Shown here piece after piece: positions 1,779 through 47,624 of a DNA stretch of 64,000 nt. The notes beneath the pieces were generated by a model that was not told the DNA's origin, searched no databases, and saw only the letters and a list, made by a program, of their open reading frames with translations. This DNA is from Anaeramoeba ignava BMAN. Taxonomy: Eukaryota; Protista; Anaeramoebae. The stretch lies in assembly GCA_028826165.1 (NCBI GenBank), contig JAPDFW010000044.1, positions 434,001-498,000 of the forward strand. The letters are read 5' to 3'. Each line of letters starts with the position of its first letter. The stretch's first letter is position 1. The position numbers and the translations under genes are program-made.

Positions 1779-1887
1779 TTTTTTTTTAAAATGAAAAAAT
1801 GAAAAAATGAAAAATGAAAAAATAAAAAGTGGAATGAAATTAATTAATAAATTTTCATTTTTTTCTTTTCTTCATTATTTTTGGAAA

Positions 1888-8504: not shown

Positions 8505-11500
8505 ATGGTTAAATTTACAATTGAACAAATGTAATATTTTCTTTTTTTAACAAATTTAAAATTAATATTAATATTAATATTAAAATTAAAATTAAAATTA
8601 AAATTAAAATTAAAATTAAAATTAAAATTAAAATTAAAATTAAAATTAAAATTAAAATTAAAATTAAAATTAAAATTAAAATTAAAATTAAAATTAAAAT
8701 TAAAATTAAAATTAAAATTAAAATTAAAATTAAAATTAAAATTAAAATTAAAATTAAAATTAAAATTAAAATTAAAATTTAAAATTAAAATTAAAATTAA
8801 AATTAATATTAAAATTAAAATTAAAAGCAAAATTAAAATTAAAATTAAAATTAAAATTAAAATTAAAATTAAAAATTAAAATTAAAATTAAAATTAATAT
8901 TTTTCTTTAAAATTAAAAAGAAAAATTAAAATTAAAATTAAAATTAAAATTAAAATTAAAAATTAAAAAAAAATTAAAATTAAAAATTAAAAAATAAAAA
9001 TGAAAAATAAAAATTAAAATTAAAATTAAAATTAAAATTAAAATTAAAATTAAAATTAAAATTAAAATTAAAATTAAAATTAAAATTAAAATTAAAATTA
9101 AAATTAAAATTAAAATTAAAATTAAAATTAAAATTAAAATTAAAATTAATATTAAAATTTAAAATTAAAATTAAAATTAAAATTAAAATTAAAATTAAAA
9201 TTAAAAATTAAAAATTAAAATTAAAATTAAAATTAAAATTAAAATTAAAATTAAAAATTAAAATTAAAATTAAAATTAAAATTAAAATTAAAATTAAAAT
9301 TAAAATTAAAATTAAAATTAAAATTAAAATTAAAATTAAAATTAAAATTAAAATTAAAATTAAAATTAATATTAAAATTAAAATTAAAATTAAAATTAAT
9401 ATAAAAATGTTTAGTCGTTCTTTAATGAATAAAAAACAGAATATAAGAAATATTTCTGTTATTGCACATGTTGATCATGGAAAATCAACTTTAACTGATC
9501 ATTTAATCTCTAAAGCTGGTATCATTTCAAATTTAAAAGCAGGTAAAGCAAGATATACTGATGGTAGAAAAGATGAACAAGAAAGATGTATTACAATAAA
9601 AAGTACAGCAGTTTCTTTATGTTATGATTTAGAAAATATAGATATTTCTGATAATGAAAAATCTGTAAATATATATTTTTAAAAATTTAAAATTAAAATT
9701 AAAAAATAAAAAAAAAGTTCTTGATAAATTTAATTGATTCACCTGGTCATGTTGATTTTTCTTCGGAAGTTACAGCTGCTTTAAGAATAACTGATGGAGC
9801 AGTAGTTGTAGTTGATTGTGTTGATGGAGTGTGTGTTCAAACAGAAACAGTTTTAAGACAAGCTTTATCAGAAAGAATTAAACCAATTTTAGTTTTAAAT
9901 AAATTTGATAGAATGTTTTTTGAATTAAAAATGGAACCTGAAGAAATATATCAAAAATGTGTTCAAATAATTGAGGATATAAATAGTATAATATCAACTT
10001 ATAATGATGAATTACTTGGCGATATTTTACTTGATCCTATTAAAGGAAATGTTCTTTTTGCAAGTGGTTTCAAGGTTGGGGTTTTAGTTTGGATACTTTT
10101 TCTAGGAAATATAACCAAAAATCAGATTCAGATTTAGATTGGAAAAATCTTTCAAAACATTTTTGGGGTGAAAATTATTTCGATCCAAAAACTAAAAAAT
10201 GGACTTCAGCAAATGTTAATCAATTTGGTACTTCTTTAAAAAGAGGATTTTGTCAATATATTTTGGAACCTATTCAGGAAATTATTAAAGTATTATCTCA
10301 AAAAAATCAAAAGAAAATTGATGAGTTATTAAATAAATTGAAGATTAATTTGAAAGAGGAGAAAATTGGTGATGATGATGATTTGGATAATGAAAAGGAT
10401 TTAATTAGAAAAGTTTTGAAAAATTATATTCCTGTTGCTGATCCACTTTTAGAAATGATTGTTCTTCATTTACCATCACCAGTTGAATCACAAAAATATA
10501 GAGTAGAAAATTTATATGAAGGACCATTAGATGATGAAGTAAAAAAAAAATAATAATTAGGAAAAATGAAGGAAAAATTTTAAATTTTGATTTATATATA
10601 TTTTTATATAAAAAAAAAGTGTGCAAATGCAATAAGAAATTGTGATGAAAATGGTCCTTTAATGATATACATCTCTAAAATGATTCCAACAACATCAAGT
10701 GGAAAATTTTATGCATTAGGAAGAGTTTTTTCAGGAACAGTATCAACAGGTCAAAAAGTAAGAATAATGGGACCAGATTATAAACCAGATTCAAAAAAGG
10801 ATCTTTTTGAAAAAACGATCCAAAAAACAGTTTTAATGATGGGAAGAACAGTTAGCACAATAAATGATTGTCCATCAGGAAATATCATTGGATTGTTAGG
10901 AATCGATAAGTATTTATTAAAATCAGGAACAATATCAACTCATCCTCAAGCATACAATATCAAAGTTATGAAATTTAGTGTATCACCAGTTGTTAGAGTT
11001 GCTGTCAAACCAAAAAACACTAAGGATTTAACTAAATTTGTTGAAGGATTAAACAGACTCTCAAAATCAGATCCTTGTGTTTTATGTTTCACTGAAAAAA
11101 CTGGTGAACATATTATTGCTGGAGCTGGAGAATTGCATTTGGAAATTTGTTTGAAGGATTTGGAAGAAGAATTTTGCAAATTTCCTATTATTAAATCAAA
11201 TCCAATTGTTACTTTTTGTGAAACAGTTTCAATTCAATCACCATATGAATGTCTTACAAAATCACCAAATTATCAAAATAGATTGTATGGAAAAGCAAAT
11301 GTTTTGGGTGAGGAATTGAGTAAAAAAATTGAAGAAGGAGAAATATCACCAGATATGCAAGTCAAAGAAAGAGCAAAATATTTAGTTGAAAATTTTTTAT
11401 GGAATTCAAATGAATCAAAAAAGATTTGGAGTTTTGGACCTGATCAAAAAGGTCCGAATTTGTTAGTGGATTCAACAAAAGGAATACAATATTTGAATGA

Positions 11501-12056
11501 AATCAAGGATTCAATTTGTTCAGGTTTTCAAGTTGTTACTCAAGAAGGAGTTTTAAGTGAAGAACCTTTAAGAGGAGTTTTATTCAATTTAACAGATGCA
11601 AAATTACATTCAGATTCAGTTCATAGAGGAGATGGACAAATTATTCCAGCAGCAAGAAATCTTTTTTATGGAGCTCAATTAATTGCTGAACCAAGATTAA
11701 TGGAACCTATTTATTTGGTTGAAATTCAATGTTCTCAAAATTCTATTGGTTCTGTTTATTCAATTTTGAATCTTAAAAGAGGAAAAGTTATTTCAGAAGA
11801 AATTAAACAAGGAACAACTGATTCTATTATTTCTGGTTATCTTCCTGTTATGGAATCCTTTAATTTTACTTCAGAATTAAGAAGTGCTGCAAAAGGTGAA
11901 GCTTTTCCTCAAAGTGTTTTTCATCATTGGGATTTAATTCAAATTTCTCCTTTTGAAAATGGTTCAAAAACTAATTTAATTGTTAAGGAAATAAGAAAAA
12001 GAAAAGGATTAAAAGAAGAAATTCCACAAGTTGAAAAATATCTTGATAAATTATAA
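8505..12056 (+). CDS. EEF2: Eukaryotic translation elongation factor 2 (somewhat divergent)
   Basis: Exons 8505-8530 (MVKFTIEQ), 9415-9664, 9718-10538, 10620-12056. Motifs: [68 protein letters not shown]; ends YLDKL. One missing T near 10070 restores [11 protein letters not shown]. Confidence 0.93.
8570..9400. repeat. (AAAATT)n microsatellite filling eEF2 intron 1
   Basis: Directly visible hexamer array between donor 8531 and acceptor 9414. Confidence 0.9.
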
Positions 12057-16067: not shown

Positions 16068-19000
16068 TTAATCTGGTGAAGACCAAACAATTAATGCAGT
16101 TCCTCTTTGATACCATGTTTGAATTGGAACATCTTTTGGTGTTGTTAAATCAAGTGAAAATAATAACTCTTTTCTTGTATTATTCAAATAAACAGGTAAA
16201 TTAATTAAATCACTTCCAACTTTTGATTTCACATTCAATTCATTTTCTTGATTAGGAACCCATCTTAATTGAACTCTGGGTAAAGGATTTGAAATATCAC
16301 TTGAAATAGCCAAACAATTATTTTTCCAAATTGCTCCTTCAAGTGTAAAATCATCAACAAAAAAACTTGTGTTTTTAAATTTGGATTGTGTAAACTTCCC
16401 AATTTCAATCTCTAATTTTAAGGTTTCTAAAGACCACATATTAGATTGAGCCGCAGATTGTCTTGTTGCTGTGATAAATGCCTCTGGTGAAAATAACCCA
16501 CCAAGCCATATTCCATCAAGACAATAATTTTTGGATAAAATAATTTTTTGTAACTGTTTGATTCGTTTTGAAAAATCAACAATCCAAATTCCAACAGGAA
16601 TATTAGCAACTGAATAAACTCTCCAAGAAGAAGGAATAGTTGCTTGAGTTAAATCACGAATTAAACCTCTTAAGTAATTTGTGTGTTTCTGTTTTCCTTG
16701 ACATAATAATAAAATCTTCTCAAGATCTTCTCGAACTTTATTCAATAATTTTTTCCCTATTATAATTTCCCTATTGAAACATCTAAACAATGGGTCTTTA
16801 ATACTACTTTCTGTTTTCTTCAATGAATCAAGTGATTTTGGTAAAATATCAATCCATTCTCTTGTTGATTTTTCAAGTTTTTTCATCCATGAAGGTCGAC
16901 GATCTTCTTTTTTTTCTTTTTCAATATCTGATTTTTCTTCTTCATAAATATTTTCCATCTTCAAGAAATTTGCAAGTGTTTCTTTGCCTTGATTTGCTAA
17001 TAAAAGAAGTTCTGCTTTAGCAGGTAATCCGAGCCAAGCAGGATTTTCATTTTTAGGTAATTTCTCAATCCAATCAGCAAAATGTTCCATTTTGGTTCCT
17101 TTTGGAATTTCAAGTGAAAATTTATCAAATCCATCTTCAGTAAGTGAATCATATTCAATCAATTTGAAATTAGAAGAGAAAATTTTTGGAACAAGTAATC
17201 TTTCAAGCATTGAATCAAGAAGTTGTTGATCAAAATCATTATTAATTCTTCCACCATACATAACTTGTCCCAAAATGGTTCTAATTGCAATCCAAGGAAT
17301 TTCTTCAGGATTAACATTGGATCTTCCCTTTGCAACAGATTCAACCCAATAATCAATTGAATCAAGTGAACATCTTTGATCTGCTTCATTGAATTCATAT
17401 ATTTTTGACCATCCCAATGGAACATATCGAAGTCTTTCTTGAATAACAGCATGAAGCCAAGAGAGAATAAAATGCATTCTTGCTCTTTCAACTGGTGCTT
17501 TATCAACTCTTTTACTTGATAGAAGTGAAAATGTGTGGGAAAGATTAGCTTTGATTCCTGGAGGTGCTTCAAACACAAAAATTTGGCACAATCTCAAGAA
17601 ATTAACAGGTAATTTAGGATTAAATTCTGAAGTCATAAACAATCTAAATCCTGGTTCTGGATTGATATTTCTGACTCTTTTTTCTATCTGATTCAACCAT
17701 GGTGGTGCTAAATGAACATTCTTAATCAAAACCCAAGTTCCCATTTTGGATGCTGTTTCAATCGCTTGTTCAGCAAGATGATAACTTTCTTGTGATCCAA
17801 TTGCTATTGATCGTTTTTTCACTTGCAATTCGTTCGCTAATTCATCTACTCTTGTACTAGGATCATATCCTGGTTGTGTGCATAATAATAATGGTTCTCT
17901 TGCATTTGATTCTTTTTCAATAACATTTCTTAAGTTCAATTCTGGTATTGATTGGATATTGTATCCAAATACTGTTTCAACAAGACTTGATGTTCCTGAA
18001 AGAACTCGATCAGGTCTGAAGAATTTCAATAATAATAATCTTCTCAGCATTTTCTTCACATTTAGTTCTCGATTTCTTTCGCTTTCTTCCTCAATTAAAC
18101 TTGTTTGTTTATATTGTTTTTCCCAATTTTCAGGAATATTTGATTCTGGATTTGTTGATTTAATAAATCTTTTCCATTCACTTTGATTCATTCTAATATG
18201 AGAAGGTAATTCTTTAAATGAAGGTAATTCTGAGATAATTTGAAGGTATTTAATTTGAGAAGATGGAATAACTGATTCAGGAATATTATAATAAGAATTA
18301 TCAATTTTATCTTGCAATTTGTTTGGAGAAAGAATTATATCTGAACGTAATAATAGATTCATTTCTTCCTCATCAAAATCTTGTCCCTTTTGTTTCAGAT
18401 AAATTTGGGCAAGTCTTAATGCAAATGTTAGTCTGTCTTTGTGAAGTAATCCATATGAAACTCTTCTGTAAATCACCTTGAAAAGATCGTGTGTTAAAAT
18501 TTTCAATCTTTCTTCATAATCCTTAACATTCATAATATTCTCATTCATGATATTAACAACATTGAAGAAAATTCCAAGAAAGAAATTTAATGAATATTGA
18601 TACAAATAATGAATTGAACTGAGTTGTTCAAGTGTGAAATAAATTCTACTTGAAGATAATGCAAATGGTTCATATTTGGCTGAAATTTTAGTGATATTTT
18701 CTAATGTTTGATCTGCTTGATTTGCCTTTTCTGCAACTTCTGCTGCTTCTGTTTTCAATCTTTCAAGTGAATTGAAAACATAATCATCATCCAAAATATT
18801 TCCTACAACTTTATTCAAAGCATCAAGAACTGATTTTTCCAAATTTCTCAATCTGACTTTGTATTCTCCTTGCAATTTCAAAATATCTGATCTTTGTTGA
18901 TCAATATCAGGTCTTTCATTTCTTAAAATATGATTCAAACATTGTGCTTGTAAACTCTCAAGTGTAACTGTGAAATTGCAGAATGTTACTCTTGAACATA

Positions 19001-22000
19001 AATCAGGTGTGAAATTGAATGAAGGATCTCTTGTTGTCATGAATAAATTAAATGATGGTGAAAAATCAATTTCTTGATCTCCTAATCGAATCAAAAATCT
19101 TCCTCCAGTTTTGTGAACTTCTTTATTCAAAATTGGATTTAAAATTGGATCAATATTCTCAACATCTTGTAAAAGGATAGCTGTTCCAAATCTCAATGCA
19201 CTTTCCAAATTTTTCATGAAAGAATCATCAAGGAAACTTGTTTTCATAATTTTGGATGATTCAAATTGTCTCATTAAAAATTCAGTTGCTTGACCTGATG
19301 GATCAATAACAAGAGGATAACGATTAAATCTTGTTAAAATGATTGCATTTTCAGTGCAAAGATCATCTGCAGGAAGAGAATTAGATTGCCAAATCAATCT
19401 ATCATCAGGAACAGATAGATATTCAATTAATGATAATCCTTCTTTATATTTAATATTAACAGTCATTAAATGCTTTTTCCAAATATTCATTAATACTTGT
19501 CTGTAATGTTGATCAAAAAATCCAATGTAAGTTAAAAATGTTGCTGAAAGTAAAACATCTCCTGGAACTGTTGACATTTGTTCCTGGAAACCCTTTGATT
19601 CCAAACTCCATCTTCCAAGTTCGCTTGATAAACTTTTCATTAATGCAATTGATCTTTCAACTTTTCGTGAAACAACAGTCATTTCTGATTTGATTTCTTG
19701 TGTTTGGGAAATCAATTGTGCGTATTCTTCTTTATATCTTTGAATACTTTTCTCCAAATTTTCAATCATATCATTAAGTTCTTTTTGTTTATCTCTGAGT
19801 GTGTTTGCTTTCTTTTCAAGTGATGCTACTTGTTTTCTTAATGGTTCTACTTTGGAAATTACACCTGAATATTGTGCTTGTGCTTCAAGCCATTTTTGCA
19901 TTGGTCCACATGCTTTACTTGCTCTATTAACATTTTCAAAATTGAATTTTGGATCACTAAGTATTTTTTCAACTGAAGTTCTTATTTTGGGTTTAATTGA
20001 ATAAGTATCAAAATTAACAACACTTGGAATAAAATCATCTTTTCTTAACAATCTTCGAATTTCTCCCCATGAAGTATCTTTACTTCCCAAAAATTGTGAA
20101 ACTCCTTGAAGAGTCATTTTAACTAATTCAGGTGGATTTGCCATTGATTTTAATTCTTCTAAATCTCTTTTCTTGATACTGTTAACACTTTTCTTTGCTG
20201 CTAAAACTGCAGGTTCTGCTTTTGAAAGATCATCCATTGCAATTTTTTGTTGTTCTGCAATTTCCTTGTTTTGTGATTCCAATTTTGTTTGGATTTCAAG
20301 TGAAACTTTTCTTTTTGCTTCTGCTTCTTGTTGATCTTTAACCATTTGTTTCAATTTAGCTTCTGCTTCTTCATTTTTGGATTCAAGTTCTTTTCCCTTT
20401 ATTGTCAAAGTGCTTTGTAATTTCGCAACTTCTTCTTCAGTTTCTTTCATCTTTTTCAATCCAACATTTAAATGTAATTGTTGTTCTTCAAGAGAACTTC
20501 TTTTTTCATTGAAAAGATCCACATAATGTGTAATGAAATCCAAATAATGTCTTGGTGTAACATAATTACTTCTTCCTTGAGTTTTTTGCAATTTCTTTGA
20601 AACTTTTTCAACACTTTTATGAATTGTAACAAAAGAACTAACAATTGATTCTCTATGATTAGGTGAATCTGGGAAATTATCTTTTGCATCAAATTCATGT
20701 GGGAAATGAATAGGTGAAGTATAATTTGGATTTTCCAAATCAAGATATTTTGTGAATTCATATCCAACTTGATACATTGCTGATGGTGACCAATCTCCAA
20801 ACCAATCAAGTACACATCTGTTAAACAAAGCTGGTGAAGTTGCTGCTCGATTTGAAAAATCTCCTGTTGCTGGATTCATTGTGAAAACAATATGTAAATT
20901 GTTTTGAACTTGTTTTGTAAACCAATTAAATAATTCATCATCTGTATCAAGCATTACTCCATCAGAAATTGCTGCTTCTCTGCATTGATTCATTAAAGCT
21001 CCCATTTCATCTCCTTCAAATAAACCTGGTACTTCTCCACTTGCCAATAATGCATTCATTCTTTCCAAAAATGATGTTTCAAGAATATTACTTTCATCAA
21101 AAATAAAACATATTTTTTCTCCTTTAATTCCTGCTCTTTTCATAACAACTCTAAGATCTTCATCAAAATCAAATAATGTGTATTTTCTACTAATTTTGAT
21201 TTGGAAAACTGATAATCCATTCATCCAAGCAACAAATCTTGATAAAACTGTATTATGTGTAACTGTGAAATCTCCAAGTAAAAATCTTCTATTTCCATCA
21301 ATTTCAAATCCACAATAATCTCCTTCTCCAATTAATTCAACTTCAATTTCACTTTCTAAATTTGAATTTTGTATTTTATTTTGATTTCTAATTTTCTTAT
21401 TTGGATTTCTAACAGGAATTTCTTCAATTTCATTTCCTGATATTATAATTTGTTCTTTTTCTTTTTCTTTTTCACAAGAAAATCCAAGTGAACGTGAAAT
21501 GAATTGAATATCTTTATATAATTCTTCTTGATTTTCATTAATTGGAATATTATAACAATTATTCATTTCATCATAAATTATTTCATCATTTGAATCAATT
21601 AATCCTGCCAAAATATTTAATCTTGTTTCACGATCATTAATTTTATAACATTGAGGAATTTTAATTTCTTCATCTGATTTATTGTTTTCCATTCCAAGAT
21701 AAATTCCCAAATTATAAGGATCTATTGGAATATTTGGATTTGAATTGAATTGAATTGGAACTTTAAATCCAACATGATATTTTTTCCAAATTTGAGGTTT
21801 CTTAATATAATCAATAACAGCAATATCAATAACATCTCCTTTATGATTATATTTTTTACTTTCCAAAATTTGATTTATAAATTTGTTTGCGAAATGAAGA
21901 GCATTTAAACTTGAAGTAAAAGATTTAGATTCAGATAATTTTCTTTTTTTACCGTAATTGAAATATTTAATTTTCTCACAATGATTTTCAAAATAAAGAA

Positions 22001-25000
22001 CTGAATATCTTTTAAGATCTTTTTCATGATTAAGAATTGAATTGATTGTTAATTTCAAAGAAAGAATATGAGGTTCATTAACAATATATTCATCACCATT
22101 TGATTGTTTTATTCGATACATATTTTCTCTTCCTTTACAAATACTTAAAACATTTCTTGGATTTGAATCATCACCCATAAGTTGATCATTAACTTTAATA
22201 TTTTTAGCCAATTTTGATTTTCCATTATAAAGCATAACAGGAGTATTTGGATCTAAGCATTTACCAGCACCACTTGATCCAATTAGCAAACAATGACCTA
22301 AAATTTAAATAAAATAAAATTTAAATTTAAATAAAATTAAAATAAAATTTAAATAAAATTTAAATAAAATTAAAAATAAATTTAAATAAAATTTAAATAA
22401 AATTAAAATAAAAATAAAATTAAAATTAAATAAAATTTAAATAAAATTTAAATTTAAATAAAATTTAAATAAAATTAAAATAAAATTTAATTAAAATAAA
22501 ATTAAATTAAAATTAAAATAAAATTTAAATAAAATTTAAATAAAATTAAAATAAAATTTAAAATAAAATTATTTTGAAATTATTTTGAAATTTACCTTGT
22601 GGTTGCTTTAATACTCGATCAATTCTTAAAATATGATCAAGTGCTTCATTAAATAATACTAATTTAACATCCAATTCTTCTTCATAAAATACTTTCAATC
22701 TGGCTTTAACATGTTCTCTTAATTTCTCTCTATCAACATCCATATAATCCTTAGATAACCAATCACTAAATAAAATGGGTCTTTCAATAGCTTTAGGTTT
22801 CATTTTTTTGAAATATTTCTTAGAAACTGAATCTAATTGTTCATCAGTCCAATCTCTTTCTTCTTTATAAACTAATCTATCTTGAAACAATCTTAATCCT
22901 TCATGAACAAATATTCTAACAAGTCCATCTAAATCAAGATCTCCACCTAAAGGTTTTAAAATTTCTCTGAGAGAACGAGTCCATCTACTCAATTCTCTTG
23001 GTGAATAAACATAATGAGGTTGCATATCTTGTGTGAATTTTTGTTGAGAAAGTGAATAAAATTCAACCATTGCATCTGTTAATGGATCTGAATATTCCTT
23101 TAAACGAAGGACACAATCTAAGAACTGCTCTATTAAAAGTTCCATAAATTTGTTTGAGTGAATCTGCAGAAGGATAATCAACAAGAATTACAGGTGCATG
23201 TCTAAGGAATCGATGTGATAAAGGAACTCGACCAACCATTGTTGGTGGATTACATGCTCCTACAAATTGAATTCTTCTTGTTGTTACCCATTGATAATCC
23301 GATATTCTCCAAAATCCTCCTCTTTCAACTAATTGTCTTAAAAATGTTATTACTTTTTGTGTTCCATATCGATCTTGTTTGGGAAGATTAATTTCATCAC
23401 AGAAAATAACAAGCCATTTATCTGATTTTGGCTCGATAATAACTCCATTTGGTGTTTTTTGATATTTGCAATAATGTGTTAATGTTTTCATAACTAATTC
23501 AGGTGTTGTTGCACTTGAAAAATTAATTCCTACAACTTCGAAATTTGGTAATGATCGAAGTGTTGAATATAAAGTCATTGTGTTATGTGTTACAACAAAA
23601 TTATCTGTTAAATATAATTCTTCTGGATGATCAATTGTGATACATGTACATTCATCTTCTCCAACACATTCAATAGAAATTATTCTTCTTTCAAATACAA
23701 ATGGACTTGGTTCTCCAATTTTATCTTTATTTTTGGATAATTTGAATAATTCTTTTGGTGTTTTATAGAAAATTTTGCATAAATTTGTTTTGTTTGAATT
23801 TGTTTCAATTGAACACATTCCTCCTAATGATTGAATAACTTTTTTAAAATCTTGTGATAATTTTGTTGATTTACATTTGAATATAATTGAGTTATCTTTA
23901 TAATTAATGGATGAATTTGAATCTAATAATCCTTTAATAATTTCCAATCTAATTTCTTTAGAATTGAAAATGTAATCTTGAGGAATAAATAATTTATCTT
24001 TTGGTTGATTTAAAAGTCCCAATTCTTCAAGTATTTCTTTATAATGATTTTGTTTTTCAATATTTTCATTTCCAATATAAATTTCTTCTTTTCCAATTAA
24101 AACTCCAAGTAAATAAGGATCAAAAGGAACATTTCTTTCCATAAATAAAATTGGTTTTGGAGTATCAATACTAAATCTAGCTCCTTTTCTTTCAGGAATA
24201 GTTGGGATAATTTGAAGATTATCAATAATTTGTTGAGTTGTAAGAACAAATTTTTGTTTTTTATAATTTGAATGATCATTAACAGTCCAAAGATGATCAG
24301 CAGAACAATCAACAAAATCTCCATCTTCAAATTTAACTCGATAAACATGAAGTTTACCTTGTGGATAAATACCAATAATTTTAGAAGTTTTTCCATCAGG
24401 AGTGCAAACTACATCTCCAATTTTTAATTTTCCATTAATTTTAGGTCCATTTGGAGTATAAACTGTTGCTGAATTTCTAAGTGATTTACCAGATCCAGGT
24501 GGTCCACAAAGTATTAAAGGAAGATGGTCTTTAAGCCAAGAATTAACAACTTCTTCATGTCTTAAAGTATCCACAGTTGGGATAACAACATCTGAACTAG
24601 CAACCATATATGTTTCAATTTCAAGGTTTGGAACTCGATTTTTCCATAAAATCCATTCTCCATCATCAATTTGAACTTCAAAATCAATTAATGGATGAAT
24701 TTTATCTTTAGGTCCTTGAATATCACAATTATTTAATAAAAATGTTCCAAATTCTTCTCGATCTTGTAAAGACATTGATCCTCCAAATCCCCAAATCAAT
24801 GAGAAAAGTAATCTTTTTGTAACATATTTTTGGATATGTTCCTTTTTCATTGAAAAATCAACATGGGCTGAATTATATTCGTGAATATGGTTTATTCCTT
24901 GATCCAAAAGTGAGAATGCTGATGTTAATGAACGAAGATTTGTGAAATCCATTACATTTTGTTTTTTAGAAGCATAATCAATTGCTTTAATAACAACACC

Positions 25001-28000
25001 ATTTGAATCGAAATATTTCCTCAAAACATCAACACAAATTTCTTGAGTTCTTAATACTTCTTCATTTTTTTCTTTTTCATCTGAAAGTTGTTCTTCAAAT
25101 CCAGTTTTTTCACTTTCTAATAAAGGAACATGTTTAGTTTTTTCAAGATAATGAGCAAAATTCATATCTAATGAAATGATATCATCAGAGAACCAAACCA
25201 TTCCACATCTTGAAACTGTTGCTGGTGTTGCATATCTTAAATCTTGAACTTCAAACATTACTCTGACATTAGGAGTCAAAGCAACTCTTTCACCATTAGG
25301 CAAAGTAAGTATTTTATTATCATCAAGAACTGAATTTAAATTCTCAACCCAAATAGAATCAACATCTCCATCAAAAATAATCCAGTGTCTCATATTCAAT
25401 TCTCCTCTTACATTATCAACAATTTTCCTTAAAATATGTGTGAATATTCCATCAGTCCATTCTCTTGTTGTTGGATCAAGAACTCCGAAAAGTTCTTCTT
25501 TAGTAATAGCTTTAGGATCAATCACATGTGATTGTGATTTAATTCCTTCAACTCTTTCAAGTGCTTCCAAAAGAATTTTCCATGCTGTTGATTTTCCACT
25601 TCCTGATGGACCAACCATCATAACTCCATGATGAATTTTTTGTAATTGAAATAATTGAAGCATTTTTTCTATCCATCTTTTTCCTGGAACTAAATAATGT
25701 TGTTTGCAAATATCATAAATAACATTTCTTAATTCTGCCATTTCTAATTCTATTGGAAGTGCTCCTGGGAATACATCTGATAATAAACTGTGTAATAATG
25801 GAATATCATCTGCAACTAATTTTGGAATAACTGTTTCACATATACTTTTAATAACTACAAATTTTTCTTCTTCTCCAAGTTGTTTTCTATCTTTGACTTC
25901 ATCTTGTTTTTTATCTTTAATTTCTAATCTTTTTATATTTCCTGCTGAAACTAATACACTTTTTAAAGCTCTTAATCCAAAATCATAATGAGTTTGTTGT
26001 GAAAGTTGGTCTGCACATAAATTAAATAAAGGAACAACTTTTCCTGATAATTTTTCAGCTGTTTTAAATCCTATTTTAAAAAATTAAAATTAATTAAAAT
26101 TTTATATTCTTATTTTATATTTTTATTTTTGTTTTTACCTTGAGAAAAAAGCATAACTTGAGCAATTAATTCTCTATCAGGTTTAACAACAGAAATTGTT
26201 CTAAATAATGTTTTTAAATTTTCTGGTAATTGAACTCTTCCAGTATAACCAGGATTCCTAAATTAAAAAAAAATTTTTTATTTTATATAAATAAATTTTT
26301 GTGTTTTAAATTTTGTATATTTTTTACATTGTAATAAAAATTCCCATATTTGGATTAATTTTAACATTTCTTCCTATCAATTCAACTTCTTTTAATTGTT
26401 CTTTTAAAGATAATTGAATTGTTTGAATTTGTTGAGAAACTGCTGATAACATTCTTTCTTCTAATCTATTAAATTCATCAAAACATCCCCAAGCTCCACA
26501 TTGACAAAGACCAACAAAAATTCTTCCCATTGCTTGGAAATCGAAATTTTCATCACAATTAAAAACCAAAACAAATCTTCCTAATTGATTTCCAAGTGCT
26601 TTAACAGTTTCTGTATTATGTGTTACAATATGATTTTCTGTGATAAATAAATGATCTGGATGATCAATTAATATGCATTGACATTCATCTTTGCAAATAT
26701 ATTCAATTTTGGAAACAAATCTTTCATTAATAAATTTTTTAGATTTTTTAGCAATTAAAATTTTATCATTTAATGTGAAAAGTTTTTCTGGTTTTTCAAT
26801 TTCAATTCGACAATTAAATATAATTTCCTCGTTTTGTTTTGTTCTGGAAATGTAACAAATTCCTCCAAGTGATTCAATTAATTTCTTTAAATCAAATGCT
26901 AATTGTTGAGATGATGTTGAATAAATTGGTGAATTTGTTTTGGAATCAAAATATCCATTTCTATCAAGAATTCCTTGAAGTAATTGGAATCTTATTTCTT
27001 TGGAATTAAATTGGAATTCATTTGGAATAAATTTATTTTGTGAAAGTTTTGGCATATAATCATTAATTTGATCATAATAAATTTCATAATTTCCATCAGA
27101 TGTAAGATTTAATAAATGCTGAATATTTTGGAAAATTTGTTTGTTAATTGAATTGGAAATTTTGATATTTTGGTTTTCTAATATCTTTTCATTTCCTGCA
27201 ATTAAAACTCCAAAAAGATAAGGAGATATTTTGGTTTTTTGAGTTTTGAAATTTGTATATTTAGGAGTTTCTATTGAAATTTTTTCTTCTCTTCTTAAAC
27301 ATCTTCTCATTTCTTGAGTTGTTATAATTTTAGATGAGTGATCAACAGACCAAAGATGATCATCAGAACAATCAACAAAACCACCATCTTTGAAATGAAC
27401 TCTAAAAACACCAATTTTACCTTGAGGATAAACAGCAAGAATTTTAGCAAATTTTCCATCAGGAGTACAAACTTCATCACCAATTTGTAAATCACCATTT
27501 AATTTAGGACCATTTGGAGTATAAACTATAGTTGAATTTCTTAAAGATTTACCAGTTCCAGCAGGACCAGCAGGAGCACCACCTTTTTATTTATTAAAAA
27601 TATTATTTTATATTTTATATTTTTAATATTTATTTTTATATTTTTATATTTTTATTTACCTAATCTTAAATTTAATGCTTGTGTTAATGTAAGATAACAT
27701 CGATCTGTAAGTGGTGTTTGTACTAATTTATCAACAACTCCTAAATATTCAAATCCATATGCAAATGATGCATTTGCGATTGAAATCATTAATTTCTTTT
27801 CATGACTTTCCTTTTCATTCCAATAAAATCTCATTTCTTGAATCCATGAAAAATTATCCAAAGTTCTAACATTTGTTTGAATCAATCTTCTAATAACATC
27901 TCTTTGATGAATTAATTCAATAATTAAATGCTCATATTTACTTCTTGTAATTGGTTGTAAATCAAAAAGAACATTAAAAGCTAACAAATCTAAAATATTT

Positions 28001-31000
28001 CCAATCCAATCAAGTGTTTTTTTAAGAAGAGTTTCACTTTTATTTGAAAGTGCATTTTCAACTTTTTGTGTCCAAATTGCTTGAATGGTAAGAACTATAA
28101 TTTGAGCAGGTGTTGTTTCAACCCATTTTAAAAAGAGATCCTTATCAAGTTCATCTTTTGAAGATAATTGAATAAATTCTCTTAATGAAATATCCAAACA
28201 ATTTCCCAAAGAAACTCTCATTTGATTTTCAACCAAACTGAGCCATTCATGAATTTTGGGAATTTCTTTATATTTAATAGGATCTGGAAAGTTAATTTCT
28301 TCATGTTCTCTTGATAACATCCCAATAATTGATGTTTCATCATCACTTAATTTAAGTAAAGCAATTCCTGCAAACATTTTCCTTAAATGTCTTTGTATTT
28401 TAAGTACATCTTTGCTGTGTCCAATAATTTCCAAAAGATCTTCATCTCCAACAAAATAAAATCTTGGGAAAGCTGATCTTTGTTTTTCTAGATATTCACC
28501 AAGAGCCTTTTGAATTTTGGAAAGCATATCAGATAATCTTTCCAATGAATTTTGAATTCCAGGTAAATTGAGAACATCAAGAATATGAGGTGATTTTACT
28601 ACTTTTTTCATTGTAATCAAAAAATCATTATCAATATTTCTGAATTTGGATGATTCTTGAGGTAATAATTGTTGGATATCAGCACTTCCACAAAATACTC
28701 CTTCTAAATAAACCCATTTTCTTTGAACATCAATCCATGTATCAAAAAGTAAATGAACTCTGTTTAATTTATCTTCCCATCCAACTGCTTCTTCTTCAAA
28801 TACTTTATAAAATGGAGAGTTTTTCATTGCAGATAGAGAATTTAAATGATCAGAAATTTTGGTAAATAAATCATCCCATCCTCTAATCAATTTACATTTA
28901 TTTCTATAATTCACAAGTTCAAGTTCATAATTTTGCCAATGATCTTTGATTTGTTCAAGAAATTTTTCTAGAGCCAATTCACCTTGGGCAATTCTGATAA
29001 CTTCTTTAAAAATAGTTTCGTTTTTGATTAAATCCACATTGTAGATATCAGCAAGTGTTAATTCAGAAAAAACCCATTTAACTCCCAATTTATTTTGTAT
29101 TTGTTTCCAATGTCTTTCTTTAAGTGATTCTGATTTCAAATCAATAATAGTCACATTGCATTTCAAAAATCCTTTTATCATTGAATGGAAATGTTCATAA
29201 GCATTGTATTGTCTGACTTTACTAGGCAAAGCTCTGAGTTGAGTAATCAAATCATCAAGAGATCCTCTTAATTTTTTGGGAACAATTGCTGACCATGGAG
29301 TTTTTTTGATTTCCTCTAATTTATCCCAAATACTCATCAACTCATTCCAAACTTGTTTCAAGGACACAAGTTCTTCTCGAATTGGAGGGAAAAGGTTTTT
29401 ATCCTGAACATCCATATCAAGAGCTTCTTTTGCCTTTATGATTCTGTTATTGATTTCTTCAATCTCATTTAATCGTGATTCAAATTGAGCAATTTTGGTA
29501 ATTGCATGAGAAGGTTTAGTTTTACCATCTAATGGTTTATCTTTTTCCCAATCTTGATTGAATGATGTTAATTTAGTGCTCAACAATTCATCTTCTTCTG
29601 CGATTTTATGTTGTAATAAAGGTATTTCTTGATTAACTTGAGAGTTTTTTCTTGAGAAAATTTCGTTAAAAGAACTCCAAACTCCATCAACAGTTTCATA
29701 AGAAAGCCAATTTTGACCAAAAGGATAACCTTGTTTTTGCAAAATTTCTTCTCCTGAACGATATAAATCAACAGCACTTTCCCATTCGTTTAAATTTCTT
29801 CTCATGTGAGTTAATTGAGTGACAAAAGTAATGATATCGGAAGTTGTATCTTGATCCAACGAATGTTTTTCGAGTTCTGTTCTTGCATCTGCAACTGTTT
29901 GATGGAATTCTTTCATTGATGAATTTAACCTTTCTGCAAATTTATTAAGGAAATTTTTGTGCCAAGCTGAATATTTATTAGTAACTTTGGTTTGTATTTG
30001 TGAATAATCAACAGTTATTGGTCCAATATCTTTGGATGAAGAATGTGTATCTAAACCTGAACGTTCTGTTTGAATTTCAAGCAATAAATTTTTCAATTTA
30101 TCCAAATCATCGCCAACTTCCTTGTAAACTCTTTCTGGTTCTATATCCCATAAAGCTTGATTTTTGAACCATAATTTCGTGTATTCTTCAACTTGTGATA
30201 AAAGTAATTCAATTTTTTGGTATGCTGTTAATAATAATCCTTTGGGAAGAAATGTTACCAAGTTGAAGTATGTTTTGGTTTCATCAAATGAACGTGTTTT
30301 TTTGGTTCTTGATTTTTTCTCTTTTTTCTCTTTGGTTAAAATTATAATTCTTTTTTGATTACAAATAATTCCTATTGTTTTATGTAATTGTGAAATCCAA
30401 TTTTCTCTTGCTTCTTTAAATGATGGATCTAAATAAATGATTCTGTTTTTGATGTTAATACTGAAAGTCATTTTGGAAAGATTGAGTTTGATTGCGAGAA
30501 TATTTGGATCTTTCTGGATAATTTTCTTTTCCTTTTTTGGGTTTTTTTCCAATTCAATTTGTTCCAAAAATTCATCAAAAGTAATATTCCAAGCATTAAG
30601 ACAATCAGTAAGTCTTTGAAGGAAAATTTGTTCAATTTTCTGGTTTAAGGAGTTGATCCATAAATCTAAATTTGAAAATGATCCTGATTTAAGTTCATCA
30701 ACATTTTTTTGGATTTTACTGAGAATATTTTCAAAATTAGGAGCTTGGAATTCACAATTCTTTAATTCTTCCAAAGATAATTTGATGTCATGATATCTGT
30801 TGATTAATCCATCCACTTGTTCTTCAAAAATGAGTATAGAATTTCCTAATTCAGTTACATAAGAATCCAAATCAATATAATCCCAACCAATAGAACATCC
30901 CTGTTTTAAAGAATCTTGAATTTGAGAACGATAAGAAGCAATTAATGGGAAAATTTCTGTATCAACTGTTTGACAAATATGGAAATAATTTTTAATAGAT

Positions 31001-33692
31001 TCAATCAAAGAAACAGCAAAAGGATAAACTTGACCTGCATTTTTGGCAATATGCATAATTGAGAAAGGTACACGGAATCCAAGCCATTGGAGATTACGGA
31101 CTTCTTTGAAAAGTGTGATGATATCTTGATCAAAAGTAACTTGTAAGTTTAAATTTTCTCTTTTTGGAAATTCTGAAAACTGGACCTGAAACTTCCCATT
31201 TTCTAGTTTCAACTTGACGAACCCAATCATCAAAAATTTTCTGAGGATTCAATTTCTTCTTGAAATTTTCTCCATCAAGTTTAAGTTTTTGACCTTCAAT
31301 ATGATTTTCCCAACTTCTTCCAAGAACATCACCAACTCTTTTAATATAAGTATCCAATTGATTTCTAATTTGTTTAACCCATATAATTGCGCCTGAAATT
31401 GGAGGAATATCTCTTACTTCAGTAATTTTACTTGTTTCTGTTTCGATGTATTGTTGTTTGAATTTTTCATGAAGTGCTTGAATATCTTCTTTGACTCTTT
31501 CTATCAATCTTGTTTGATATTCTTGTATTGCTCCTCTAATTTTGGGTCTTACAAACAGAACATTAAATTGACTAAAAACGTGGAACATTTCACTTGCTTT
31601 TTTTGCTTTTTCAAGTTTTTCTCGAAGAATTTGAATAATTTGTTCTTCGATTGAGTAAATTTTTGTATCGTAATGTTTTAATGATTCACTCCAAGTTTCA
31701 TTTCCTTCTTTTGAAAGAGATAGAGGATCCACATTTCTTACATATTCATAAGCTTCTTTAACTTCCTCTATTGCGTTTATTTCTGTGAATTCTGTTGATG
31801 TTTTTGGAAGGATTCTTGTAATAACATTTTGCAGTTGATCGTGTTGTTTTCTAAATTTTCTAAGTTGTTCTAATCTTTCTTTCAATGGTTGAATTTGTGT
31901 TGATATCTAATAAAATTTTATAAATGAATTTTATAAATGAATTTTATAAATGAATTTTATAAATAAATTTTAATTTTAATTTTATAAATGAATTTTAATT
32001 TTAATTTTATAAATTTTAATTTTATAAATGAATTTTAATTTTATAAATGAATTTTAATTTTATAAATGAATTTTATAAATAAATTTTTTATATTTACTCG
32101 AACTGAAAACTTATTTTCTCCTTTTCTTCTTGCAATTTCCCTAATAATATCTCTTAAATGAGTAACTTGATCTTCCCATGTTTGAAATAAATCAAAAGAT
32201 TTAGCAATTAAATTATCAAATTCATCAAATAGTAAATTAAGTAAATTTTTTGAACTTAAAACACGAATCACTTGCAAACAAAAATCTCTTGAAATTGATT
32301 CAACAAATAATAAGGCTCTTTGAAGAGGATAATTAGTATTTTTAAGTTTTCTTAAGTGACTAAAAATACGTAGAATTGATTCTCTAATTTTATCAAGATC
32401 TTGAGCAGAAAGCATTTCACTAAGTGGGAAATCTTTCATAAGAACATTATAATTTTCTGAAGTATCTAATAGTTTTTTTAATCCTGTATCAGATTCAAAT
32501 GCAAATCCTGCAAAATGTTTTTTCTTTAAATTTAAAAATTCAAGTTGAAGTTGTGTTTCTGTTGTTTTAACTTGTTTATCAATATTTTTTAATGCTTTTT
32601 CTAATGAAATCCAAAAGTTTATTTCTTGTAATGCTGTTCCACTTGAAACATCTCTTTTCATTCTTGTTACTTTTTGTATGTCTGTAATCCATTTATTAAC
32701 ACCATTTTGAACTCTTGTTAAAAATTCAGGATCATCAAATGAATTTCCTAAGTCTGTTAATTTAACTCTTGTTCCATTTTCTTTTGCCTAAATTTACAAA
32801 TAAAAATTAATAAAAATTAATTAAATTATTAAATATTATTATTAAATTAAAATTATTAAAATTATTAAATTAAAATTATTATTAAAATTATTAAATTTAT
32901 TAAAATTATTAAATTAAAATTATTAAATTAAAATTATTAAAATTATTAAATTAAAATTATTAAATTATTAAAATTATTAAAATTATTAAATTATTAAAAT
33001 TATTAAAATTATTAAATTAAAATTATTAAATTATTAAAATTATTAAATTAAAATTTATTAAATTATTAAATTACCTTTTGAATAATTTCAGTAATTTCTG
33101 GTTCAATAAACAAAACAACTTCAGGAATTTCAACATTTTGTTGGCATTGAATCAAAGTTAATTCCAATTCAGCTAATTTTTTCTTAACAGCAGGAGCATC
33201 TTGAGTAATTTGTAATTTGACTTTTGAATTTTGAATAAATTGATTTGATTGTTCTCTTATTTTCAAATCAAAAGAATGAAAAAACGGCCAAACAGAATAA
33301 TGCATAAGATTTTGAATAGTTTCAAAAGGAGAACCTTCACCAATATTCATAACATGAATTTGAGAAGCCAAAGAAGCATCCTGTTTGATTATTGGGAATC
33401 TCTTTATAAAAGCTATGCTAGTTGATTTTCCACCAAGATACATTACTTCTAAATCCAAAGTGAAAATTTCTTCTTCTTCTGTTTCTTTTGGATAACAACC
33501 TATAAAAAGTACGTTAATTTCACTCTCTTTTGCATATTTTGTTATCTTTTCTTCTGTTTCTTTTTCTTCCATTAATTTTTTTATCCCTTTTTCTCGATTT
33601 TCTGATTGAAATGTTGCAAATAATGCTTGACATGCTTTTTCAACGTATTCTAAAAGAATTTTTGTTTCAATTATTGTTTGTGTATCTGCCAT
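16068..33692 (-). CDS. DYNC1H1: Cytoplasmic dynein 1 heavy chain precursor containing three inteins
   Basis: Exons 33692-33075, 32787-32098, 31906-27660, 27582-26328, 26257-26139, 26070-22596, 22297-16068. Motifs: [90 protein letters not shown]. Exons total 16634 nt; removing extra bases at ~31163 and ~23103 gives 5543 aa, and removing the inteins gives ~4595 aa. Confidence 0.96.
21252..22259 (-). mobile_element. Intein (336 aa, class 1, degenerate LAGLIDADG endonuclease) in dynein AAA4 Walker A
   Basis: GSSGAGK|[13 protein letters not shown]...VNEPHILSL...LAGLIDSND...[24 protein letters not shown]|TVLSRFVAW. Has Cys1, block-B His, terminal His-Asn and +1 Thr. Excision restores [16 protein letters not shown]. 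Confidence 0.96.
23582..24484 (-). mobile_element. Intein (301 aa, class-3 signature, degenerate LAGLIDADG endonuclease) in dynein AAA3 Walker A
   Basis: CGPPGSGK|[13 protein letters not shown]...DCSADHLW...[26 protein letters not shown]|TMTL. Excision restores the conserved [12 protein letters not shown]. Confidence 0.96.
26615..27547 (-). mobile_element. Intein (311 aa, class-3 signature, degenerate LAGLIDADG endonuclease) in dynein AAA1 Walker A
   Basis: GPAGTGK|[13 protein letters not shown]...DCSDDHLW...[26 protein letters not shown]|TETVKALG. The N-terminal part was read manually upstream of ORF 26324..27310. Excision restores [15 protein letters not shown]. Confidence 0.96.
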
Positions 33693-33978: not shown

Positions 33979-35806
33979 ATGAATATTTGGAAAGTTATTG
34001 AAGAAAATAATATTGAATATTTAAAACAAATTAGAAATATTCCAGAAAATGAATTAAAAAATGGAAATAATTTAATTTTGAATTTTGCAATAGAAAAAAA
34101 AGTTTCAATAGAAATTATTCAAATTATTAATTGAAAAAATTACAAATATAAATTTAAAGAATCAATTTGGAAAGAATTCTTTACATTTAATTTGTCAAAA
34201 TCAAAATATTTCATTTGAAATTATAAAATTATTAATTGAAAAAGGAATTGATATTAATTCAAAAACAAATAATAATGAAACTGCTTTACATTATGCTTTT
34301 GAATATAACTCATTAGAAATTATTCAATTATTGATTGAAAAAGGAATTGATATTAATTCAAAAACAAAATATGATAATGAAACTGTTTTACATTATGCTT
34401 GTAAAAATCAAAATATTTCATTTGAAATTATAAAATTATTGATTGAAAAAGGAATTGATATTAATTCAAAAACAAATAATAATGAAACTGTTTTACATTA
34501 TGCTTGTAAAAATAAAAATATTTCATTTGAAATTATAAAATTATTGATTGAAAAAGGAATTGATATTAATTCAAAAACAAAATATGATAATGAAACTGTT
34601 TTACATTTAATTTGTAAAAATCAAAATATTTCATTTGAAATTATAAAATTATTGATTGAAAAAGGAATTGATATTAATTCAAAAACAAATAATAATGAAA
34701 CTGCTTTACATTATGCTTTTGAATATAACTCATTAGAAATTATTCAATTATTGATTGAAAAAGGGATTGACATTAATGATTATAATATTTATAATCAATC
34801 AGTTCTTTCACTAGCAATTCGCAAACAAAGAAAAGAAATAATTCAATTATTGTTAATGAATGATGCAAATGTTTTTGATCTCACAGAAAATCAAATCACA
34901 AATGAATTTATTCACACATTTTTCGAGGTTTATTCAATTAATCAGGATTTGAACAAATTACTAAATTCAAATGATAATTTCTCAGATTATCAAATTCAAT
35001 CAAATGATGGTTTCAAATTTAATCTTCATAAATTGATTCTTTTAACAAGATTTGATAATAATGAAACAATTTTAAAGAAATTTGTTAATATTTGCTCCAA
35101 AAAATCAAAAGAATATGTTGAATTTATTCTTAATTTTCTTTATACTGGATTTCTTAATTTCCAACAAATTGTTCAAAAATTAGATCAAAATCAAAATCAA
35201 AATCAAAATCAAAATCAAAATCAAAATAAAAACCAAAATGAATCAATTTCAGTAATTTCTCATTCTCATTATTTGAATGTTTGGGATTCTTATTATGATT
35301 TTTCAACTCCTCTTTCTCCTGATCTTGATGAAGATGAAACACAAATTTTTTTGAAAATGAATAAAGAACCTTCAAAAAAAGAAAAAGAAATTAAAGAATT
35401 TTTCAAAGAAATTGGATTTGATTCAAAATGGTTTGAAACGAAAAAAGGAAGAAAAGGAATTTTAAAAGATTTTCATAAATTATATCAACAACAAACAACA
35501 AAAGATTTTACAATTATTATTTCAAATGAAAATGAAGAAGAAAAAGAAATCAAAGTTCATAAATTAATATTAATAATAAGAAGTGAATTATTCAAAGGAA
35601 TGTTCCAATTAAATGTTCAAGATACTTCAAATAAAGTTCATGATTATTCAAGAAAATCTTTTGAAACTATTCAACAATTTATTTATTTTCTTTATCATGA
35701 TAAATTTGAAAAAGAAATCAATTCAGAAATCAGAGAAGAATTTGAAGATTTAAAAGATTATTATCAATTAAATCAAGATTCAATAATTGATTTAATTTTA
35801 AAATAA
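33979..35806 (+). CDS. Ankyrin-repeat plus tandem BTB/POZ domain protein
   Basis: ATG at 33979 with a one-base slip at ~34122. Repeats of ETVLHYAC...IIKLLIEKGIDIN. BTB-like segments FSDYQI...FNLHKLILLTR and KDFTII...IKVHKLILIIRSELFKGMF. Confidence 0.85.
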
Positions 35807-36026: not shown

Positions 36027-39000
36027 TTAATCTTTTTTGGAATTATTTTTGGAAATTTGTTCCAAATTAAATTGAATTTTCTTTTTAAAAGTAGAAAGAT
36101 TTTGTGAAAATGATTGATGAAAATTATCTTGAAGTTGATTAAAATTTTCCAATTCTCTCCTCAAATGATTAGATAATTTTTCATTTTTATCTCCTCCAAT
36201 TTCAAAAATTCCCCAATGAAATTTTAATAATCCCAAAACAAAAAGAGTTTTTCGAATTTCATTAATTAAAGGAAAATCTGGATCTTCTCTCAAACTTTTT
36301 TGGTTTTTGATCTTATTTGTGGTAATTTGTTGAAATACTGAACCAAATTTCCCAAGGATAGCTCCATCTAAACTCATTAAAATAAAAGAATTTCTTTTAT
36401 CATTATCTTTATAATCATTATAATCTTCATTATTATTGTTATTGCTATTGTTATTGTTATTATTATCTTTCTTGATATTTCTCATTTCCAAATCTAAAAT
36501 AAATTCCATAATATCTTCAATTTCTTGTTGAGTTAAAAATATCCAAATTTTTGATTTTGATTTTGGTTCAATTATTAATAAAATTCTTGTAAAAAATCTT
36601 AATCTAAAATTTAATATTTCTTTTTGATTAATTGGATTGATAAAATTTTGAGTAACATATAAATTGTTTAAGAAATTTTCATTTTGAAATTGGGGATTCA
36701 TTTTTGGATAAATCATTTCTGGAATTTTTTGAATTAATTTGAAATATGAATTTGTTTTAATTTTTGAATTGATATTTTCTTGAATAATAAAAGAAATATT
36801 AATTTTATTTTCTTTATTTGCTGGGAATCGATTTCCAGTCATTAATAATTCATGTTCTTGTTCATGAATTGACATTTCTAATTTTAAATGAGTTTCTTGA
36901 TTTGAATTATCATCTTTTTGTGATGAATAAAATTTTTCAGGTAAAGATTGAAAAGAATTTTCAAAATTAATTTCAATTTTTTCTAAATTATCCAAAATTC
37001 TTTTTTTGATTTGATTTCCTTTTGATTTAAATTCTGAAATTTCTTTTGTAATTTGTTTAAATATATTTTCAATTTGTTGTTTTTTTAATTGAATAAATTT
37101 TTTGATAATTTCTTTAGAATCTTCCATTTCAGTTTGTTGTGAATATTGTTTCCAATAATCTTGAATATTTTGTTTAATAAATATTTCTCCTTCTTTTCCA
37201 AATAATTTAAATAATTTTCTTTTCTTTTCTAATTCTTTAATTTCTAAAATCCATTCAAAAATTTCACTTTTAATAATTGTATTAATTTCTTGAATAATTT
37301 CATAAATTGAAATAAGAGAAAATTGTTTCAAATCATTAATAAAAGTAAATGAAATTATATCTGTTGATTTTAATTTAGATTTATCAATTTCTTTTTTCAT
37401 TTGTTGATTTTTTTTGAGAATTTCTTCTTTCTCTTTTTGTTTCTTTTCAATAAGTTGATTAAAAAATATTTTCATTCCAGGATCATTTCCAGATTTTTTG
37501 TATTGAGTTTCAAAAGATTTAATTTCTTTTCAATTTTTGAAATTTTTGTTTGAATTTTTTCCAATTTTTCTGTTAATTTTTTCATTTTGAATTGGATAAT
37601 TTTAGGATCATTTTCATTATTATCATTGTTATTGTCATTATTATCATTATTATTATTGTTATTGTTATTGTTTTTATTGTTGTTATTGCTATTATTATTG
37701 TTGTTTTGTTGTTTTCTTTTTTTGATAAAGAAAGAATTGATTTTATAAAAATAGATGTTGTTTGTGGAATAACAAATGATATTTTTTGTGTTCCAAAATT
37801 TAATTTTCTCATTCTCATTGCTCCTTGAAGAAGTTGAACTGTTTGTGTTTTTTCAGAAATTGATAAAAGAGCTTCACAAAATAATGGTTGTTGAATATCT
37901 GCTCCAATAGTATGACTTTGATCATAAAAAGTAAATATTTCTTCTTGATTAAGTTGTGTTATTGTTTGAATTGTTTTTGGATCACTTCTTCCAATCGGAA
38001 TTATTGGAAATTTCAAATTAAAATCATTTTCTTCTTCATTTTCTCTGATTATTGAAAGAAAATCTGTTTCATCAAAAAATAAAATTCCTTTGATTTTGTT
38101 TTGTGTTTCTTTTTTATGTTTTGAAAAAAATATCATCATTTCTTTGGCAATTTCTGTATTTGAAAATCCTTTGAAATATGCTCCAACATCAATAAAAGCT
38201 TGAAATGGAAATTTGTTTTCATTCTTTTCAAGAATTTCTTCAAAAAGTTGTAAAGGTGTTTTTTTTGGTTGAATGATAAATATATTTTTATCTTCAATTT
38301 GAAGAAGACTATTAACAACTCTTCCAAGACTTTTGATCTCTTTCTTTGGTTTGTGAAGTTCCTGAATATCCAACAATTAATTGGAAAAAAGAACAAAGAT
38401 CTGATGATGTACTATTAAGTTGTCTTGATTCAGATCCAAATTGTTCTAAAATTTCTTCTTTAATATATTGATGAAAATGTGAATAAACAAATACTTTGGA
38501 ATTAAACAAATTTTCATTAACAATTTTTTGAATTTCTTCAAGTTTTTGTTTTGGTAATTGTTCAATTCTAACTTCAGAAATATCAATTTTAAATTCTTCT
38601 TCAATTTGTTTTTTTAATTTTGAATGTTGAATTGAATTTTGAGAAGTTAATTCTTTGTATTTATTTTGTAAAAATGAAAGGAAATGTTGAATTTTATTTG
38701 AAGGTAATCCAATATAATAATAATAATGAATTGTTTTACACAGAGTTTCAAATATATTTGCAAAAATTGATCCTTCTATTGGTTTATTAGCTGCTTTATA
38801 AGGAATTGCAACATGAATTTGATTTGAATTTGTTTCTTCAAATTTCCATTTTTCTTTTGAAATTCCAAAATGTTCATTTGGTTGTTTATCAATAACTTGT
38901 GGTAATAAATCATTAAGAATATATCTACTCCATGCAAGTTTTTCAGGTAAATTTTGATCTTTTTGTTTTTCAAAATCTTCTTTGGAAAGAGATACTTCAT

Positions 39001-47424: not shown

Positions 47425-47624
47425 TTTCAAAATAAATTTTTTTGAAATTCAAAGGAAAAAAATGATTTTCAATTTCCAAGTAGACATTTTTTCCTTTTTT
47501 TTCCTTTTAAAAAATTGAAAACCGGAAAAAAAATTTAAAACAATAATTCAAACAATTTCCTCAAGTTTTGATCAAGAAAATCGATTTGAAAAGTTGATCG
47601 AAAATTCTTTTCCAATTATTTACC

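Follow-up and report, generated by a model that had tools for sequence, protein, structure and literature searches.

Three predicted inteins from two families interrupt the P-loops of an Anaeramoeba ignava cytoplasmic dynein-1 heavy chain

Results

A dynein-1 heavy chain gene with three in-frame inserts

The window analyzed in this work is a stretch of 64,000 nt from contig JAPDFW010000044.1 of A. ignava BMAN (434,001-498,000), and coordinates are given as positions within it. A gene of seven exons occupies the minus strand (Table 1). Its exons contain the complete Pfam series of a dynein heavy chain, in which AAA_6, AAA_7, and AAA_8 are each split by an insert. The exon encoding the tail and linker scored 1125 bits against cytoplasmic dynein-1 and less than 300 bits against axonemal and dynein-2 chains. 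With a dynein-1-type tail and linker, six AAA modules, a stalk, and a C-terminal domain, the product is, judged by its sequence, a cytoplasmic dynein-1 heavy chain, which agrees with the initial annotation of this DNA. The six introns are all of the GT-AG type and very AT-rich, with a GC content of 1-7%.

The three inserts have lengths divisible by 3, and each is placed at GK|T, directly after the Gly-Lys of a Walker A motif. All three end with Thr-His-Asn and are followed by Thr at position +1, and they have a GC content of 23-25% and no GT-AG ends. The initial annotation had described in-frame inserts of 311, 301, and 336 aa ending with His-Asn before Thr, and its coordinates and junctions turned out to be exact. 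By exon count, skipping one base at each of two +1 frameshifts, the precursor has 5543 aa and the mature chain without the inserts has 4595 aa, in which all four P-loops are intact. This count bears out the earlier claim that excision regenerates canonical P-loops and a 4595-aa chain, although that claim was silent on the two frameshifts it ignored. It should be noted that the joined model was used for counting alone and that the database searches were run exon by exon. The GenBank model of the gene, named 'intein-containing dynein heavy chain precursor', has 3291 aa and stops at the second frameshift.

Table 1. Positions of the dynein-1 heavy chain gene and its features in the 64,000-nt window
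Feature	Position	Strand	Description
Cytoplasmic dynein-1 heavy chain gene (by sequence)	16068..33692	-	7 exons; GenBank KAJ5078912.1
Spliceosomal intron 1	32788..33074	-	287 nt
Spliceosomal intron 2	31907..32097	-	191 nt
First +1 frameshift	31130..31170	-	near 31144, with some ambiguity as to the base; the paralog keeps the frame
Spliceosomal intron 3	27583..27659	-	77 nt; intein 1 follows 35 nt downstream
Intein 1 (predicted)	26615..27547	-	311 aa, AAA1 Walker A; Ser1, His64, Trp66, Cys291, Thr309-His-Asn; class 3 signature; decayed LAGLIDADG domain
Spliceosomal intron 4	26258..26327	-	70 nt
Spliceosomal intron 5	26071..26138	-	68 nt
AAA2 Walker A, intein-free	25589..25612	-	ends with Gly-Lys-Ser (TCA) versus Thr (ACA) at the three occupied sites
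Intein 2 (predicted)	23582..24484	-	301 aa, AAA3 Walker A; Ser1, class 3 signature; decayed LAGLIDADG domain; intein 1 family
Second +1 frameshift	23095..23110	-	near 23104, in a T run that lies between intein 2 and intein 3; both paralog contigs keep the frame
Spliceosomal intron 6	22298..22595	-	298 nt; intein 3 follows 38 nt downstream
Intein 3 (predicted)	21252..22259	-	336 aa, AAA4 Walker A; class 1 with Cys1; VMA-like, from the Hom_end_hint family; endonuclease decayed

Two intein families with decayed endonucleases

In-frame removal of each insert restores the host protein, as expected of an intein. Intein 3 matched Hom_end_hint (PF05203) over its full length with an E value of 1.7e-17, above the cut-off, and Hom_end was matched as well. 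In inteins 1 and 2, neither Pfam nor NCBIfam profiles detected a Hint domain above the cut-offs. The profile search recommended in the initial annotation thus succeeded for intein 3, and inteins 1 and 2 were instead recognized through sequences and folds in the PDB. The sequence of intein 1 matched the gp41-1 and class 3 DnaB inteins, and its predicted structure (pLDDT 84) matched the folds of PI-SceI, TliVMA, and class 3 DnaB inteins. For intein 3, a model built from its sequence alone reached a pLDDT of 36 and could not be used. Blocks A, B, F, and G of the Hint fold in inteins 1 and 2 are supported by these PDB matches together with a family alignment. Inteins 1 and 2 share 45-50% identity, and both are about 21% identical to intein 3. 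We therefore assign the three inserts, from profile, PDB sequence, and fold matches, as inteins of two unrelated families, and the proposed occupation of AAA1, AAA3, and AAA4 by inteins stands. Intein 3 has 281 database relatives, and GK|T is the insertion site in most of the scorable ones.

A LAGLIDADG-type middle domain is kept in all three inteins. An active LAGLIDADG endonuclease is expected to carry an acidic residue in blocks C and E, and this catalytic residue is missing from both blocks in each intein. Among 109 relatives of intein 1, 91 have the catalytic acidic residue per block (C, E), and Asp-Gly predominates in the same two blocks among the relatives of intein 3. Because the acidic residues are lost here while most relatives keep them, the endonucleases are probably inactive and the three inteins no longer mobile.

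Two candidate splicing routes

Class 3 inteins are defined by a triplet of Trp at B12, Cys at F4, and Thr at G5 (PMC5050341, PMC5222942), and a nucleophile at position 1 is 'not required' (PMC5222942). Inteins 1 and 2 contain His64, Trp66, a Cys that precedes the last Asn by 20 residues, and the terminal Thr-His-Asn, which together make up the Trp-Cys-Thr triplet. In an alignment of eight members of the intein 1 family, Trp66, Cys291, and Thr309 are invariant. By pattern-based residue counts over the 109 scorable database relatives of intein 1, the full triplet occurs in 98, the first residue is Ala in 68, and it is Ser in only 4, indicating that a nucleophile at position 1 is not needed in this family. 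Since this nucleophile is dispensable, the Cys in block F would be the residue that starts splicing in inteins 1 and 2, and we consider it likely that both follow the class 3 route with a dispensable Ser1. However, classic class 3 members have no Ser, Cys, or Thr at position 1. Because inteins 1 and 2 both begin with Ser, we filed them as class 3-like and not as proven class 3 inteins, and Ser1 could still be able to act. The combination of Ser1 with the class 3 triplet makes these two inteins a clean test of which nucleophile initiates splicing when both are present.

In intein 3, Cys1 and His64 (B10) are accompanied by Leu at B12 and Gly at F4 in the alignment. Because Cys1 is present and the Trp-Cys-Thr triplet is absent, we assigned it to class 1. 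The standard Ser1 start implied in the initial annotation is doubtful for inteins 1 and 2, given their class 3 signature.

Choice of the insertion sites

AAA1, AAA3, and AAA4 are the active ATPases of dynein (PMC7683685), and the Walker B motif of AAA2 in the window dynein has no glutamate. The initial annotation had read this as occupation of the hydrolysis-competent sites, and the rule does not survive comparison with the rest of the genome. In another dynein, on contig C126, a sequence resembling intein 3 begins at 525173 in the same open frame, directly after position 326 of the AAA_6 profile. This profile position corresponds to the AAA2 lysine in the window dynein, the C126 insertion site being placed by coordinates alone. 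An intein after the AAA2 lysine means that AAA2 is open to invasion. Relatives of intein 1 in the A. ignava genome are found at GK|T of, among others, two DEAH-type helicases and two kinesin-like P-loops, with Thr at +1 in every site read out. Relatives of intein 3 account for 80 matches across the genome assembly, which comprises 147 contigs and 42.8 Mb. Restriction to hydrolyzing sites is therefore not supported as a rule, given the AAA2 intein and the presence of the same families in helicase and kinesin P-loops. The DNA at the three occupied sites has CTGGTAAA/ACA in common while the AAA2 site differs, and the occupancy pattern is better accounted for by target sequence or by chance than by hydrolysis. 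In a tree, inteins 1 and 2 fall in an unresolved group with helicase inteins, and a direct jump from AAA1 to AAA3 is possible. The AKWK/TAEE intein site known from the literature is present in Prp8 of the same genome.

A paralog with a nearly identical motor block

A second dynein-1 gene with all three inteins lies at the ends of contigs C92 and C113 (GenBank model KAJ5071176.1), which are 98% identical where they overlap. Its tail shares 66% protein identity with that of the window copy, at a fourfold-site divergence of 0.38. The corresponding divergence is 0.076 in the linker, 0.013 or less in the AAA1-AAA4 block including the inteins, and 0.02-0.05 from the stalk onward. The inteins of the two copies differ in 7-8 of approximately 920 codons and the exteins between them in 41-55 of approximately 990 codons, where the differences are mostly amino-acid changes and lie in patches. 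This pattern fits homogenization of the two motor blocks by gene conversion with retention of some paralog-specific patches. The data do not favor a recent transfer of just the inteins by homing from one paralog to the other over conversion of the complete block: at fourfold sites the inteins and the intervening exteins are homogenized to the same degree, and the endonucleases look dead. Assembly polishing could have exaggerated the similarity of such near-identical paralogs. The paralog's shared, near-identical, intein-bearing motor block was not found in the main text of PMC10710043. Paralogs with divergent tails and a homogenized intein-bearing motor may offer a route by which endonuclease-dead inteins are kept or passed from one paralog to another.

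Discussion

We favor, with a probability of roughly 0.88, the explanation that the window holds a dynein-1 gene with three cis-splicing inteins of two families, which arrived by homing, are retained in the mRNA, and are spliced out of a precursor of about 5540 aa, and whose endonucleases have decayed. Protein splicing is inferred here from the sequence features described above. In the proposed sequence of events, the inteins would have reached the GK|T P-loop DNA by homing, like their relatives in the helicases and kinesins of the same genome, and the endonucleases would have decayed after arrival. The spliced mRNA would retain the inserts and yield the precursor of about 5540 aa, from which each intein would excise itself and join Lys to Thr, rebuilding the P-loop. 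For intein 3, the class 1 route would comprise an acyl shift at Cys1, transfer to Thr+1, and Asn cyclization, while in inteins 1 and 2 the Cys in block F would attack the upstream peptide bond before transfer to Thr+1. The inteins would persist because only exact loss yields a working P-loop.

Could the inserts instead be introns, removed at the RNA level? We rejected this explanation, whose probability is close to nil, on composition, ends, and homology: the inserts are open frames with Hint and LAGLIDADG homology, their GC content stands far above the 1-7% of the true introns, and GT-AG ends are absent. In addition, intein 1 is retained in frame in an A. ignava protein in EukProt, which ends before inteins 2 and 3. 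The TransDecoder-style header of this entry suggests a transcript assembly. From position 1400 on, 45 of its 53 diagnostic residues are those of the window copy, and its tail matches the paralog; because a paralog tail switches to a window-copy motor, the entry is probably a chimera of both transcripts. This entry also bears on whether the inteins are real but the window copy is a recent pseudogene, with the work done by the C92/C113 paralog carrying the same three inteins. The two +1 frameshifts, neither of which is present in the paralog, and the GenBank model that ends at the second of them are in line with a pseudogene. Against it, the transcript-type sequence follows the window copy in the motor, and 16.6 kb of AT-rich coding DNA contains no premature in-frame stop. 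At both frameshifts one base has been gained within or next to a homopolymer, the assembly is Nanopore-based (PMC11550330), and a neighboring gene shows approximately seven similar intron-free frame changes. The frameshifts are probably assembly errors, and we regard a pseudogene as unlikely.

In another conceivable explanation, the inteins have been recruited as a switch, with dynein maturation depending on conditional, for example redox-sensitive, splicing at three active ATPase sites. Occupation of AAA1, AAA3, and AAA4, all three hydrolyzing sites (PMC7683685), would suit such a role, as would the retention of inteins with dead endonucleases in both paralogs, and PMC6195587 presents a class 3 DnaB intein as a sensor of oxidative stress. 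However, the same intein families sit in many unrelated P-loops of the genome, AAA2 is occupied in the C126 dynein, and the difficulty of exact loss accounts for the retention, so that we judge recruitment as a switch quite improbable, more so than a pseudogene. A specific form of the idea, in which oxygen or redox state would affect dynein maturation in this anaerobe through the two class 3-like inteins that start from a cysteine, and gene conversion would keep the intein-bearing AAA1-AAA4 block identical across two dynein-1 paralogs with different tails, appears equally far-fetched. If true, it would amount to a protein-splicing switch on a cytoskeletal motor.

Comparison with known systems

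The triple-intein dynein is already known, having been published in 2023 and labeled in GenBank. The initial annotation had suspected that the locus was catalogued, and the name of KAJ5078912.1 and PMC10710043 prove it right. In the latter, Gallot-Lavallee et al. 2023 report three inteins in one dynein paralog of A. ignava BMAN, name the cytoplasmic dynein 1 heavy chain among the intein hosts, describe the spread of class 3-like cluster 1 inteins among P-loops (Fig. 6B), and demonstrate splicing for three other Anaeramoeba inteins; the main text contains no list of AAA sites and no endonuclease state for the three dynein inteins. Since the triple-intein dynein is published, the headline adds little by itself. 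What the present analysis contributes is a likely class 3-like route for two of the inteins, the decay of all three endonucleases, an occupied AAA2 site that breaks the hydrolysis rule, and the homogenization of the paralog.

The closest known system is this published dynein of the same organism, where the window gene corresponds to KAJ5078912.1 and the paralog to KAJ5071176.1. The Anaeramoeba cluster 1 inteins, as described in PMC10710043, resemble inteins 1 and 2 in the P-loop site, the Trp-Cys-Thr triplet, and the relatives in DEAH-type helicases and kinesins; on that description, as distinct from the dataset of the paper, inteins 1 and 2 would belong to cluster 1. Class 3 inteins such as Mycobacterium smegmatis DnaB-1 and MchDnaB1 share with inteins 1 and 2 the His at B10, Trp at B12, Thr at G5, and the GK| site, as well as the fold and a Cys at F4, which in inteins 1 and 2 lies 20 residues before the Asn at G7. 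In contrast to the classic members, which have no Ser or Cys at position 1, inteins 1 and 2 combine Ser1 with a decayed endonuclease domain. Intein 3 resembles the class 1 inteins of the Sce VMA/PI-SceI type (PF05203, PF05204) in Cys1, His at B10, Gly at F4, Thr-His-Asn, and the P-loop location, whereas it differs from them in having Thr at +1, in being shorter, and in having lost the aspartate-glycine pairs of blocks C and E.

A second dynein-1 paralog with a near-identical motor block

The ends of contigs C92 and C113 of the same assembly (G000; L055-L060) carry a second paralog of the cytoplasmic dynein-1 gene found at window 16068-33692. Its tail shares 66% protein identity with that of the window copy, whereas the block from AAA1 to AAA4, together with all three inteins, is nearly identical between the two. 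As judged from sequence, the motors of the two paralogs appear to be under concerted evolution, with divergent tails. No mention of this second paralog and its near-identical motor block was found in the main text of PMC10710043.

Inteins elsewhere in the genome

In the other dynein heavy chain of this genome, an insert resembling intein 3 was matched at G000:C126:524970-526420 (minus strand), and these match coordinates suggest that it begins directly after the AAA2 lysine. Prp8 (L061-L062, G000:C98:194552-204331) harbors several inteins, including one at the published AKWK/TAEE site, which served as confirmation that the organism is Anaeramoeba ignava. A DEAH-type helicase with a relative of intein 1 is present on C68 in two near-identical copies (L007, L010), and the copy at C68:374472 has a frame change within the intein. 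At one contig end (G000:C103:1-2028, L024), the intein of the C75 helicase recurs as a broken copy.

Neighboring genes and introns

Approximately seven frame changes interrupt the DUF3638 gene, with no intron-like sequence at them, and may represent either assembly indels or gene decay.

Genes and introns around the inteins in the window
Feature	Position	Strand	Remark
Actin-family gene	1807-3036		ordinary neighbor
SH3-domain gene	3143-5876		ordinary neighbor
EF-G/EFL1-like GTPase gene	10587-12056		ordinary neighbor
Spliceosomal intron	22298-22595		38 nt upstream of intein 3
Spliceosomal intron	27583-27659		35 nt upstream of intein 1
Ankyrin-BTB gene	34112-35806		ordinary neighbor
DUF3638-domain gene	36030-47448	minus	apparent single giant gene

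Introns have been proposed as barriers to homing (PMC10710043), whereas introns and inteins lie close together in the window dynein gene.
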